Source: Thalia democratica
Lineage: Eukaryota
Assembly: GCA_965202585.1 (NCBI GenBank)
Contig: OZ241828.1
Location: 52,018,001-52,082,000 of the forward strand
Direction of reading: 5' to 3'
Length of the DNA: 64,000 nt
Under the pieces are notes generated by a model. The model saw only the letters and a program-made list of their open reading frames with translations, did no database searches and had not been told where the DNA came from. Below are positions 6,601-10,499 of the stretch, piece by piece; within the stretch, counting starts at the first letter, position 1; each line of letters begins with the position of its first letter. The position numbers and the translations under genes are program-made.

Positions 6601-7263
6601 ATGTGTAAATACGATACAATCAAACTCCAAGAACACGAATTGGATTACAAGCTGCTACATAAGGCTGCCGACGGAACCTGCAAGAGTGAAGTCTTCTACC
6701 ATTTCAACAAGAAAAATGTCAAATTTGAAGTAACCAGCATCAGTAGAGTCAAGTCGCGATCAAACATCAAAGAAGAAACTTCTAATCCGGCCAACCCGAA
6801 TCTGATGATGTTTCATGGTACGCACGGTGAGTCAATCAGAGGAATATTTAGAAATGGTTTTCGCGTTCCCGCCACGGCTAGCCACGGAAGAAGGTTCGGA
6901 GAAGCAGTGTACCTGACTCCAAGCAGCGCTTACGCTCTGAGGTTCTGCTTCAGTCACGACATGGTACAAGATTTTGAAATAAAACCGGACGGCCTGCACA
7001 AAGTGAAAATACTGGTGTGCGCGATAGCAGTTCAACCATCAGACATGCTAACATACGACCTAAAGGACCAAATAGTCGACAAAAGAGATCAAACGAAAGA
7101 AGCTGCATCTTGTTTCAAGCGCTTTAAGGAGCGTTATTCACCGGGTGATCGAAATTTTAAATTTGATAGCAAGAATAGAGTCATTAATGTAGGACCAATC
7201 AAAGACCGAGCTACCGGGGCAAGCACAAATAAAGCTTTAGATGACTATAAACTAAATACTTAA
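6601..7263 (+). pseudogene. PARP-like ADP-ribosyltransferase paralog A, copy A1 (N-terminus intact, C-terminus with catalytic Glu missing)
   Basis: 220-aa ORF with LMMFHGT (catalytic His) and FGEAVYLTPSSAYA (catalytic Tyr). It diverges from the other A copies after aaagcttt (about 7238) and lacks DEYCV. A putative 5'-UTR intron runs from ag|gtaagt (6381) to ttctttgcag| (6566). Confidence 0.8.
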
Positions 7264-7434
7264 TAACTTACTTAATTAGATGTTTCTTGGTACTTACTAG
7301 ATTAAACTTCAATGATAATTTGTTAATTTTAATGTAGATACCTTTTAGTAAATTCTTAACTTAAACTACAAATCAGCTTTAACTATGTAATTTTTACAGT
7401 TTTAAGGTTAACAGTTTTTAAGTAAGTGAAAGTT

Positions 7435-8319
7435 ATGAACAATTATAGAACAAAAGCCCTCTTAAAAACCGATCCGGATCACGACCTGCTAAAAGAAGCT
7501 ATAAAAGGAACCAGTAAAAATGATTTATTTTTTAATTTCCCAGGAAAAGAAATCAGTTTTCAAGTAGTTAATATAAAAAGAGTTATATTCAACTCAGAAG
7601 AAAAAGTTACTCTTAACCCCGAACTATACTTAAAAGGGGTAATCCCTGATAACAGTTTTGAATCAACGCCTAATCAGTCTCTCAAAGAGATGATAAGCCA
7701 AGGCGTCATTGATTCATTCGAAGAGGCTAATAACTCCGACAGATATGCTTCAAATGCTGTTGGAGTTACAATACCCACAATTAATAGTAAAAATTTGCCA
7801 GCTTTAATAGTTGAAAACGAAAAAATTAATACTAAAAACCCTCAGTTAATGCTATACCACGGATCAAAAGGTGCTTCAATTAATGGAATACTAAATAATG
7901 GTTTCAGCATTCTTGAAGAACCTATACACGGAGCAAAATTTGGCTCTGCGGTTTACCTAACACCATCAAGTACCTATGCATGCCGCTTTGCTCTCACTCA
8001 ACAGCAAAAAAAAATTTTTGCCCAAGAAGCAAGCGGAAAGATTAGAATTAAATTTTTTTCAGTTTCAGCATATGCAGACAAACTACAAAGATTTAAAGGA
8101 ACGTATTACATAGGAGAGGAAAATTTTAAGTATGATAGTAACGATAAGATTATAAACTTAGGGCCTATTAAGGTAAGAGAACCAACTGAAACAGTTGACT
8201 CGAGGCTAAGTAATTTAGTAGAAGAATATTGTATTTACAACTCTAAAGATGCTGTTCCCCAATATGTTATAGAATATGAAGTGTCTTGGGATCTGTGTGA
8301 ACATTCTAAATGTTCTTAA
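7435..8319 (+). CDS. Complete single-coding-exon PARP-like (H-Y-E) ADP-ribosyltransferase, paralog B, 294 aa
   Basis: LMLYHGS, FGSAVYLTPSSTYA and VEEYCIYNSKDAVPQYVIEY match the PARP/tankyrase catalytic triad. The N-terminus aligns with A1 (FQVVNIKRV vs FEVTSISRV) and carries an insertion of about 70 aa. First ATG at 7435, preceded by an acceptor-like tttttacag. Confidence 0.85.
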   Translation: MNNYRTKALLKTDPDHDLLKEAIKGTSKNDLFFNFPGKEISFQVVNIKRVIFNSEEKVTLNPELYLKGVIPDNSFESTPNQSLKEMISQGVIDSFEEANNSDRYASNAVGVTIPTINSKNLPALIVENEKINTKNPQLMLYHGSKGASINGILNNGFSILEEPIHGAKFGSAVYLTPSSTYACRFALTQQQKKIFAQEASGKIRIKFFSVSAYADKLQRFKGTYYIGEENFKYDSNDKIINLGPIKVREPTETVDSRLSNLVEEYCIYNSKDAVPQYVIEYEVSWDLCEHSKCS

Positions 8320-8435
8320 ACTGGTGTTCTAATTTATAAAAAAATTTATAATATTTTTGTTTATAAAATATTTCTTTTTTAAACGTTATTCTAAAAACAT
8401 ATTCTAAATCGTTAATAAAATATTCTGATATACCA

Positions 8436-8865
8436 AAGCAGCGCTTACGCTCTGAGGTTCTGCTTCAGTCACGACATGGTACAAGATTTTGAAATAAAAC
8501 CGGACGGCCTGCACAAGGTGAAAATACTGGTGTGCGCGATAGCAGTTCAACCATCAGACATGCTAACATACGACCTAAAGGACCAAAAAGTCGACAAAAG
8601 AGATCAAACGAAAGAAGCTGCATCTTGTTTCAAGCGCTTTAAGGAGCGTTATTCACCGGGTGATCGAAATTTTAAATTCGATAGCAAGAATAGAGTCACT
8701 AATGTAGGACCAATCGAAGACCGAGCTACCGGGGCAAGCACGAATAAAGCTTTGAAGGATAAGGTAGACGAATACTGCGTGTGCGACCCAAAAGATGTTG
8801 TGCCGAGTTATGTGATAGAATATGAAGTGTCTTGGACGCAGTGTGAAGATTGTAAACTTAACTAG
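8436..8865 (+). pseudogene. ART paralog A copy A2 (5'-truncated; lacks His and Tyr motifs, retains Glu)
   Basis: Homology begins abruptly at SSAYALRFC and ends with DEYCVCDPKDVVPSYVIEYEV...KLN*. Confidence 0.85.
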
Positions 8866-9136
8866 ATAGGTTTTAAATTTTAAAACAAAGTAGAATATTT
8901 TTGTATTTAAGTTTTTGTATATAGAATTTAAAAAATATGTTTTTTTAGATATAAAATTATTTCTAAAACATTATAAACTTTTTTTAAAATCTCAAGTTAA
9001 ACTTTATGTGATATAATATTAAACTTAATGCTTTGCACTAACTGTATGATTAATACTTTAGGTAGGCAGAATCATCAAAGTCATGTAGGAATGAAACATA
9101 AAAGAAGAAACTTCCAATCCGGCCAACCCGAATCTG

Positions 9137-9682
9137 ATGATGTTTCATGGTACGCACGGTGAGTCAATCAGAGGAATATTTAGAAACGGTTTTCGTGTTC
9201 CCGCCACCGCTAGCCACGGAAGAAGGTTCGGAGAAGCAGTGTACCTGACTCCAAGCAGCGCTTACGCTCTGAGGTTCTGCTTCAGTCACGACATGGTACA
9301 AGATTTTGAAATAAAACCGGACGGCCTGCACAAAGTGAAAATACTGGTGTGCGCGATAGCAGTTCAACCATCAGACATGCTAACATACGACCTAAAGGAC
9401 CAAAAAGTCGACAAAAGAGATCAAACGAAAGAAGCTGCATCTTGTTTCAAGCGCTTTAAGGAGCGTTATTCACCGGGTGATCGAAATTTTAAATTCGATA
9501 GCAAGAATAGAGTCACTAATGTAGGACCAATCGAAGACCGAGCTACCGGGGCAAGCACGAATAAAGCTTTGAAGGATAAGGTAGACGAATACTGCGTGTG
9601 CGACCCAAAAGATGTTGTGCCGAGTTATGTGATAGAATATGAAGTGTCTTGGACGCAGTGTGAAGATTGTAAACTTAACTAG
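9137..9682 (+). CDS. ART paralog A copy A3 (181 aa; H, Y and E present, first 68 aa absent)
   Basis: MMFHGT...AVYLT...DEYCV. An in-frame TGA at 9092-9094 closes the frame upstream, and homology to A1 starts at aaacat (about 9094). May be non-functional. Confidence 0.7.
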   Translation: MMFHGTHGESIRGIFRNGFRVPATASHGRRFGEAVYLTPSSAYALRFCFSHDMVQDFEIKPDGLHKVKILVCAIAVQPSDMLTYDLKDQKVDKRDQTKEAASCFKRFKERYSPGDRNFKFDSKNRVTNVGPIEDRATGASTNKALKDKVDEYCVCDPKDVVPSYVIEYEVSWTQCEDCKLN

Positions 9683-9953
9683 ATAGGTTTTAATTTTTAA
9701 AACAAGGTAGAATATTTTTGTATTTAAGTTTTTGTATATAGAATTTAAAAAATATGTTTTTTTAGATATAAAATTATTTCTAAAACATTATAAACTTTTT
9801 TTAAAATCTTAAGTTAAACTTTATGTGATATAATATTAAACTTAATGCTTTGCACTAACTGTATGATTAATACTTTAGGTAGGCAGAATCATCAAAGTCA
9901 TGTAGGAATGAAACATAAAAGAAGAAACTTCCAATCCGGCCAACCCGAATCTG

Positions 9954-10499
9954 ATGATGTTTCATGGTACGCACGGTGAGTCAATCAGAGGAATATTTAG
10001 AAACTGTTTTCGTGTTCCCGCCATGGCTAGCCACGGAAGAAGGTTCGGAGAAGCAGTGTACCTGACTCCAAGCAGCGCTTACGCTCTGAGGTTCTGCTTC
10101 AGTCACGACATGGTACAAGATTTTGAAATAAAACCGGACGGCCTGCACAAAGTGAAAATACTGGTGTGCGCGATAGCAGTTCAACCATCAGACATGCTAA
10201 CATACGACCTAAAGGACCAAATAGTCGACAAAAGAGATCAAACGAAAGAAGCTGCATCTTGTTTCAAGCGCTTTAAGGAGCGTTATTCACCGGGTGATCG
10301 AAATTTTAAATTTGATAGCAAGAATAGAGTCATTAATGTAGGACCAATCGAAGACCGAGCTACCGGGGCAAGCACAAATAAAGCTTTGAAGGATAAGGTA
10401 GACGAATACTGCGTGTGCGACCCAAAAGATGTTGTGCCGAGTTATGTGATAGAATATGAAGTGTCTTGGACGCAGTGTGAAGATTGTAAACGTTCTTAA
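9954..10499 (+). CDS. ART paralog A copy A4 (181 aa; N-truncated, G->C in the GF motif, likely original 3' end)
   Basis: Same frame structure as A3, with RNCF instead of RNGF. It ends CKRS* (gttcttaa), like paralog B (CS*, gttcttaa). Confidence 0.7.
   Translation: MMFHGTHGESIRGIFRNCFRVPAMASHGRRFGEAVYLTPSSAYALRFCFSHDMVQDFEIKPDGLHKVKILVCAIAVQPSDMLTYDLKDQIVDKRDQTKEAASCFKRFKERYSPGDRNFKFDSKNRVINVGPIEDRATGASTNKALKDKVDEYCVCDPKDVVPSYVIEYEVSWTQCEDCKRS

Follow-up and report, generated by a model that had tools for sequence, protein, structure and literature searches.

PARPs that consist of the catalytic domain alone have been described before: Dictyostelium has one, DDB0304590 (PMC2964712), seven bacterial PARPs comprise the PARP domain only and several viral PARPs have likewise been described (PMC4245714). 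As such proteins are already on record, the family considered here is not a new kind of gene. Its members were found in a stretch of 64,000 nucleotides from Thalia democratica (assembly GCA_965202585.1, contig OZ241828.1, positions 52,018,001 to 52,082,000 of the forward strand), which was analysed at its full length and is referred to below as the window, with positions counted from its first letter. Between 6601 and 10499, on the + strand, the window carries five open reading frames (ORFs) with mutually similar products belonging to the PARP catalytic-domain family of ADP-ribosyltransferases (ARTs), here called copies A to E. We consider it reasonably probable, if some way from certain, that they form a birth-and-death cluster of lineage-restricted, minimal PARP-type transferases with one probably functional member, copy B. 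With the surveyed catalytic-only eukaryotic PARPs the family shares the stand-alone domain and a patchy, lineage-specific distribution, but it differs from them in lying in a tandem cluster with partial copies; a close sequence relationship to them was not detected, the exhaustive search with copy B described below giving only eight matches at E<=1e-3, none of which bears a name. A literature search for an intronless tandem PARP expansion returned nothing matching. What makes the family notable is that it combines a small size with a full His-Tyr-Glu (H-Y-E) set, stands isolated in sequence space and has full-length and truncated copies laid out in tandem.

Each of the five segments is a single unbroken ORF, and four of them pass the gathering score of the Pfam model PF00644 (26.7 bits) by a wide margin (A 50.9, B 55.2, D 49.7 and E 45.0 bits; E-values from 1e-11 to 9e-15), the 129-aa ORF of copy C giving no match to this model as it is too short. 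The four matches, together with the 98-100% DNA identity of C to copies A, D and E, place the observation far beyond chance, and the claim of an earlier, sequence-only reading of the window that five homologous ART segments lie within 4 kb is thus confirmed. The same reading had taken the segments for an array of five genes, and here it did not hold: when completeness is judged against full-length relatives from metagenomes (249-254 aa, among them P0001 with 249 aa), the five segments are one complete gene (B) and four fragments, and a sixth, inverted relic lies nearby, outside the interval occupied by the array. The locus is a real, if fairly ordinary, example of duplication and breakage in a young gene family.

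The way in which the individual copies are broken can be followed in some detail (coordinates are collected in Table 1). Copy A is 86% identical to residues 1-213 of P0001 and ends after ~213 codons, with the last ~36 codons, including the strand that carries the catalytic Glu, lost; its PF00644 match (E 1.8e-13) extends over profile positions 19-120 of 199 only. The homology between A and D/E stops near the 3' end of the ORF of A and is followed by sequence homologous to the upstream flank of the gene. A is 3'-truncated through one deletion or rearrangement junction and is probably non-functional. Splicing of A to C, D or E as a source of the missing 3' end was considered and rejected, there being no GT donor where the homology ends and the downstream sequence being homologous to the upstream flank. 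The homology of C to A, D and E begins abruptly at 8436, and C is identical to D over 300 nt of DNA. Together C, D and E make up a tandem array with a period of 817 bp, in which the D/E unit is built from ~190 nt with homology to the native 3' flank, a decayed leader (~codons 42-57, 65% identity to A, two in-frame stops) and, following it, codons 58-249, which are 98-100% identical to A. The spacer at 8866-9056 shares 63-65% identity with the sequence that flanks the P0001 genes on their 3' side in two metagenome loci (L002 and L003) and recurs at 9683-9873 with 99% identity. D and E retain the His, Tyr and Glu of the triad and lack ~57 N-terminal codons that belong to the fold; as the N-terminal strands and helix are absent, these two copies are unlikely to fold alone. 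Copy E differs from C and D in its 3' end and downstream flank, and an E-type truncated leader (98.6%) and 3' flank (90%) are both found on the metagenome contig L004, which encodes P0002 (181 aa, 97% identical). Between the inverted relic and the 3' ends of C, D and E the complementarity is 79-81%, and tblastn with P0001 residues 223-249 recovers the relic at 63% identity. Neither terminal inverted repeats nor other mobile-element borders were found around the array.

Copy B stands apart from this debris. It matches PF00644 with an E-value of 8.9e-15 and keeps the His (HGS), the Tyr (AVYLTP), the S-x-Y motif and the Glu (EEYCI); its frame contains no stop where ~23 would be expected, and none of 20000 shuffles was stop-free. 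Relative to the A-type copies dS is saturated and dN is ~0.5, and its GC content at third codon positions (GC3, 0.25) equals that of a Kelch gene of the host in the same window. Saturated dS and a GC3 settled at the host level indicate that B is old, and a frame that has stayed open despite this age points to long maintenance. B is thus an old, diverged paralogue and probably functional. Its AlphaFold2 (AF2) model has a mean predicted local distance difference test score (pLDDT) of 71 and a predicted template modelling score (pTM) of 0.70, with core values of pLDDT 84-93, and the top Foldseek matches of this model are to the PARP1 ART domain (E ~7e-11, probability 1.00).

Every full-length member has H-G-(T/S), the Tyr in (A/G)-V-Y-L-T-P, S-S-x-Y and the Glu in (D/E)-E-Y-C-(V/I), and these can be aligned with the HGS and EY(V)IY motifs found in tankyrase and PARP2. 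The complete triad described in the sequence-only reading is present in B, D, E and every full-length relative, and that part of the claim stands; it does not extend to A, which is without the Glu strand, or to C, which is without His and Tyr. The AF2 model of P0001 (pLDDT 69, pTM 0.74) superposes over nearly its full length of 249 aa, in alignments spanning 243-253 residues, on the ART subdomain of PARP1, which has 237-241 residues, and also on that of PARP2 (TM 0.64-0.71), and Foldseek returns PARP1/2 ART domains for it with E-values of ~1e-11 to 1e-12, among them 4e-12, and a probability of 1.00. In these models the ~68 N-terminal residues of the family are predicted to form the opening strands and helix of the ART fold and not an accessory domain. 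When a family profile was run against the Protein Data Bank (PDB), the best match was PARP2 (E 5e-9), with the chain 5dsy, a helical-domain-deleted "constitutively active PARP-2", at the top, followed by PARP12, PARP1, tankyrase-1 and PARP15 at 27-31 bits; none of the solved PARPs is more than marginally similar (27-39 bits), and this comparison gave no orthology to any one of them. As judged from sequence and predicted structure, the family is a PARP-type H-Y-E ART made up of the catalytic domain alone, equivalent to the ART subdomain of PARP1/2 only. The H-Y-E triad is necessary but not sufficient for ADP-ribose chain elongation and some H-Y-E PARPs are mono-transferases; the sequence of the family would fit mono- as well as poly-ADP-ribosylation.

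Comparison with the described groups of PARPs sets the family apart from each of them. With the ART subdomain of PARP1/PARP2 (PDB 5ds3, 5dsy, 6bhv, 8fyz) it shares the fold, the triad and the S-x-x-Y motif; however, the sequence identity is only ~15%, the WGR, PARP_reg, zinc-finger and BRCT domains are missing, there is no sign of DNA-dependent activation and copy B has an extra insertion. More generally, the WGR (PF05406) and helical (PF02877) domains of the DNA-dependent PARPs (PARP1/2/3, clade 1) are absent, the protein starting at the first ART strand. The catalytic domain of tankyrase-1/2 is the best single-sequence PDB match for B (E 0.0035), with the HGS and EY(V/C)IY motifs aligned, but neither ankyrin repeats nor SAM are present in the 249-294-aa proteins, the similarity is marginal and under the family profile the match is no better than those to PARP2, PARP12, PARP1 and PARP15. 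The macro-, WWE- and CCCH-PARPs (PARP7, 9-15) carry domains which the family lacks and usually have an H-Y-(I/L/Y) triad, whereas the third residue here is Glu. In the PARP16/6/8 clade (clade 6) an extra conserved helical region, PfamB_2311, has been described (PMC2964712). The family differs from this clade in having Glu in place of a non-Glu third residue and in lacking a hydrophobic tail such as the C-terminal membrane anchor of PARP16, and the 60 highest-ranking of the 75 PDB profile matches include no clade-6 chain. Bacterial and phage ARTs of defence systems and toxins are represented by curated models in PADLOC and NCBIfam, none of which the family matches. The PARP-like proteins of giant viruses and iridoviruses (Bodo saltans virus ARTs and IIV-6 100L; BFVD) have the same PARP-type fold and some are short, but they are only 12-15% identical to the family and do not score above cellular PARPs.

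Close relatives are few. A word-index protein search with A returned six, all from marine metagenomes in ENA and mostly from Tara Oceans (PRJEB4352), with 54-97% identity, the full-length forms being single ORFs of 239-254 aa; the same search with B gave no match. An exhaustive phmmer search of 1.84 billion cluster representatives with B gave eight matches at E<=1e-3, of which two are family members and one is a more distant stand-alone protein of 245 aa (P0008), the remote matches including the AT-rich multi-domain PARP proteins P0009 and P0013. The proteins P0001-P0008 score 34-71 bits on PF00644. Intact A-type genes do exist in related genomes, and on the contigs of these relatives genes of ~0.4 GC lie within flanks of 0.19-0.30 GC, a contrast also seen in the window. 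When A and B were looked up by exact sequence, public assemblies had no record of them, and IMG/VR viral contigs, JGI metagenome contigs and GTDB bacterial and archaeal genomes yielded pattern matches only and no confirmed relative. Given so few matches across the databases, the family appears to be small and isolated and to be limited, up to now, to a single kind of marine organism, and the earlier proposal of a lineage-specific family is borne out. P0008 (loci L005 and L006) is the nearest outgroup, a stand-alone H-Y-E PARP-domain protein from Tara metagenomes with a GC3 of 0.72 and flanks of 0.21 GC, which may be a distant paralogue from the same or a related organism.

No accessory Pfam domain (helical, WGR, macro, WWE, ankyrin or zinc-finger) was detected in A-E or in the metagenome relatives, in agreement with the stand-alone architecture noted in the sequence-only reading. 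The ORFs terminate 10-17 residues past the last strand of the fold with no hydrophobic tail, and the N-termini, read directly from the sequence, are polar with no signal-peptide-like hydrophobic stretch, which counts against a secreted toxin. Upstream of the genes, a T-rich tract followed by CAG is conserved 25-60 nt before the ATG in A, B, the metagenome loci L001-L003 and L007, and the distant P0008 locus, where an upstream TTTTACAG-TTTTAA motif was also seen as in the ART family. The pattern TTTNCAGTTTTAA occurs twice in the window (6560 and 7393) against 0.3 expected, and the T-rich/CAG sites are at 6553-6572 and 7386-7405; ~22% of random 120-nt windows carry a site of this kind. The upstream flank of B is 64-66% identical to that of A (6424-6588) and to the upstream regions in L002 and L003. 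The conserved sites suggest a splice acceptor in the 5' leader, and as a similar site precedes the host Kelch gene (28600-28610, - strand) and the Kelch loci L009-L011, it is probably a general feature of the genes of this organism, that is, the acceptor of a 5'-untranslated intron or of trans-splicing (spliced leader). In-frame stops lie 15 nt before the ATG of A and 12 nt before that of B, between the acceptor-like site and the start, so that any upstream exons of these two copies are necessarily non-coding. The genes were thus rightly called intron-free as far as the coding sequence is concerned, but not in the 5' leader, where splicing is suggested; and with these stops, and no orthology to a multi-domain PARP, the copies do not appear as the last exons of a longer gene of that kind.

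According to the reading that we favour, a full-length member is a protein of ~250 aa comprising the ART subdomain only, with neither an autoinhibitory helical domain nor a targeting domain, and A, C, D, E and the inverted relic are partial A-type copies that arose through tandem duplication and deletion. The intact proteins are predicted to bind NAD+ through H-G-(S/T), the Tyr of G-x-x-x-Y and the nicotinamide-stacking motif S-x-x-Y, and the Glu of E-Y-x-(I/V) would then transfer ADP-ribose to a substrate. Lacking a helical domain, they would not be subject to gating in the style of PARP1/PARP2 and, lacking a signal peptide, they would act inside the cell. The pattern of turnover fits, weakly and by analogy, a role in stress, defence or genetic conflict. 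The fast-evolving vertebrate PARP4, 9, 13, 14 and 15 were reportedly linked to host-virus conflict by Daugherty et al. in 2014, and these proteins share with the family a catalytic domain of the PARP type as well as turnover in copy number; they are, however, large and multi-domain and mostly H-Y-(I/L/Y), whereas the family is small and its overall ratio of non-synonymous to synonymous substitution rates (dN/dS) is 0.15-0.41.

Several points weigh against this reading and should be considered with caution. The AF2 models are of moderate confidence (mean pLDDT 69-71) and were built from 11-12 input sequences. Copy B contains an insertion of 75 residues (57-131) ahead of the His motif, which is modelled with low confidence and predicted to be disordered, and its best database match is only 43% identical, so that with no close orthologue the constraint on B itself is not measurable. 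Among the window copies A, C, D and E the pairwise dN/dS is 0.3-0.56 on <=12 changes and is indistinguishable from relaxed constraint. The term lineage-restricted refers to absence from the databases searched and would have to be read in that sense, and a defence or conflict role is suggested only by analogy, by this restriction and by the turnover.

Some of these points could be taken to mean that the whole locus is dead, with B either (recently) inactivated too or functionless and the working members elsewhere in the genome. Of the six pieces derived from an ART gene five are truncated; for B no orthologue could be detected and, beside its disordered insertion, B has lost ~25 residues that are present in A-type proteins between the central strand and the DS motif. 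We nevertheless regard a dead locus as unlikely, as the 294-codon frame of B remains open far beyond the chance expectation in spite of its age, all catalytic motifs are kept, the acceptor-like motif upstream is conserved and the core of the model is well defined. The birth-and-death pattern proposed in the sequence-only reading is supported here by the partial copies, the decayed relic and the one old diverged paralogue.

At the level of the whole family, Nei-Gojobori dN/dS is 0.15-0.41 in all deep within-family comparisons (dS 0.3-2), values from which purifying selection is concluded. The identity of A to D/E jumps from 65% to 98-100% at one common boundary, D and E differ at 11 coding positions, and across A, C, D, E and P0002 the variable columns, 15 in number, form a mosaic with one four-haplotype pair of sites. 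The simplest reading of the near-identity of A, C, D and E is recent duplication and/or gene conversion between adjacent copies. It could also be proposed that the truncated copies are not debris and that they are instead retained as gene-conversion donors or as short expressed products, in a module of a full-length gene, ~200-240 nt of 3' flank and a 5'-truncated copy starting at codon 42-48. The same layout is indeed found in the P0003/P0004 lineage, where in two metagenome loci (L001 and L007) a decayed second copy, starting at ~codon 48 and aligning with the D/E leader, lies ~240 nt behind the full-length gene; as this lineage is at dS ~0.6 from the window copies and the arrangement is seen in both, it seems to be older than the split between them. 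The common boundary and the mosaic sites would fit a donor role, as would the open 181-codon frame of an E-type copy in an independent metagenome contig. However, in L001 and L007 the truncated copy has decayed to 25-50% aa identity with the copy beside it, its pieces lying in different frames, and with such heavy decay it is not under constraint there; conversion between adjacent homologues is expected without any function, D and E are without the first strands and helix of the fold, and the mosaic is based on 15 columns only. We therefore consider a retained role for the truncated copies quite unlikely, and its most specific form, in which a full gene and a truncated copy 200-240 nt downstream are kept as a module whose truncated copies template the diversification of an intracellular effector, very unlikely. 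Were it true, templated diversification of this kind would be an arrangement not described for ARTs.

As regards its origin, the family could have been acquired recently from a giant virus or a bacterium as a toxin-like, catalytic-only ART, an idea also raised in the sequence-only reading. The catalytic-domain-only architecture would be in keeping with it, the remote matches P0009 and P0013 and the best BFVD match, a Bodo saltans virus ART (E 5e-10), point in the same direction, and the coding GC of the A-type copies (0.42-0.45) is well above that of their flanks (0.16-0.24). Yet the exons of the P450 and gelsolin genes in the same window have a GC of 0.39-0.47 in surroundings of ~0.22, equal to that of the ART copies, and as the A-type copies resemble host exons in their GC, nothing in the composition points to a foreign origin and compositional foreignness was rejected; the GC3 of B is likewise host-like. 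PADLOC gave no match and NCBIfam only sub-threshold RNA 2'-phosphotransferase noise, no relative was confirmed in IMG/VR, JGI contigs or GTDB, and cellular PARP1/2 structures match as well as or better than the viral ones. The acceptor-like sites are shared with host Kelch genes, and non-coding flanks are homologous between loci. Recent horizontal acquisition is thus very improbable indeed. Retroposition, which the sequence-only reading had also thought possible, is not supported: the copies lie head-to-tail and share 190-400 nt of upstream flank, including the acceptor-like site, as well as a 3' flank of ~190 nt, and a search for repeats flanking them found none. These shared flanks, the site and the tandem layout argue against retroposition of these copies and for local tandem duplication instead. 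In all, comparisons of databases, structures and flanks gave no evidence for a viral, bacterial or retroposed origin.

That the 817-bp repeats are an assembly artefact which over-counts one copy can hardly be right, for although C equals D over 300 nt and the repeats have a unit of exactly 817 bp, D and E differ in their coding positions, 3' ends and flanks, C has a 5' junction of its own and L004 independently supports the E-type structure.

Should the intact members turn out to be active, they would constitute a natural counterpart to the engineered forms of PARP1/PARP2 that lack the helical domain. No H-Y-E PARP of a eukaryote would be smaller, and as they would be neither gated nor targeted, one may ask how a cell tolerates and directs such an enzyme. 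In addition, the family adds a marine lineage to the taxa with expansion and decay of PARP-type genes, a pattern usually taken as a mark of parasite or virus conflict. In practical terms the value is modest, as the kind of gene is known, its function is a prediction and most of the counted "genes" are fragments.

Table 1. Positions of the ART copies, their flanks and neighbouring genes in the window
Feature	Position	Strand	Description
5' leader of A	6553-6600	+	T-rich tract ending CAG, then ~40 nt of conserved leader
Copy A	6601-7263	+	220-aa ORF with native start, 3'-truncated; His and Tyr motifs kept, catalytic-Glu strand gone
Upstream flank and 5' leader of B	7244-7434	+	Carries acceptor-like TTTACAG
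Copy B	7435-8319 (ORF from 7426)	+	294 aa from ATG 7435; only complete gene
Copy C	8436-8865	+	5'-truncated A-type, ~codon 108 to stop; without His and Tyr motifs
Spacer of 817-bp tandem unit	8866-9056	+	Counterpart of the native 3' flank of the gene
Copy D	9057-9682	+	5'-truncated A-type; 181-aa ORF 9137-9682; PF00644 E 4e-13
Copy E	9874-10499	+	5'-truncated form like D; ORF 9954-10499
Inverted relic	14500-14614	-	Last ~27 A-type codons and ~30 nt of 3' flank; decayed, one in-frame stop
BACK-Kelch gene	27209-28546	-	445 aa, one ORF; no BTB domain within the ORF
Cytochrome P450 exons	46848-47183 and 50150-50407	+	Multi-exon gene spanning 43614-50407
Gelsolin-repeat exon	57179-57448	-	Multi-exon gene spanning 52980-58931

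The window as a whole has ~24% GC, contains no runs of N and is eukaryotic in its gene content. The neighbourhood had been called intron-rich, which is correct for the split P450 and gelsolin-like genes but not for the BACK-Kelch gene with its single long ORF. The BACK-Kelch protein has ~100 relatives of 33-58% identity, each ~450 aa long and all on ENA marine metagenome contigs, partly in tandem on contigs of 15-22 kb (the loci L009-L011 are among them), and its closest named relative is a fish BTB protein at 27% identity. From these sequences it looks like a large intronless expansion in the same marine organism; the 20-kb Kelch contigs that were inspected held no diagnostic neighbour genes.

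Rfam and tRNA scans of the window gave no tRNA and a single match, to a type I hammerhead ribozyme (RF00163) at 37355-37397 (+), which with 34.8 bits narrowly exceeds the gathering score of 34. At 21749-21913 (-), a 55-aa ORF fragment gave a weak, sub-threshold match to the CCCH zinc finger (E 0.007). An exon-like stretch at 15260-15400 (-) ends in a GTGAGT donor and its translation resembles the activation-loop/subdomain IX region of Ser/Thr kinases, a likeness read by eye, as Pfam gave no match for this ORF. The inverted ART relic lies just downstream of this exon on the same strand and is possibly intronic to the kinase-like gene. Finally, ~0.9-1.2 kb upstream of the ART array there is a 91-nt direct repeat, the two copies of which (5395-5485 and 5674-5764) are 279 nt apart and 78% identical.

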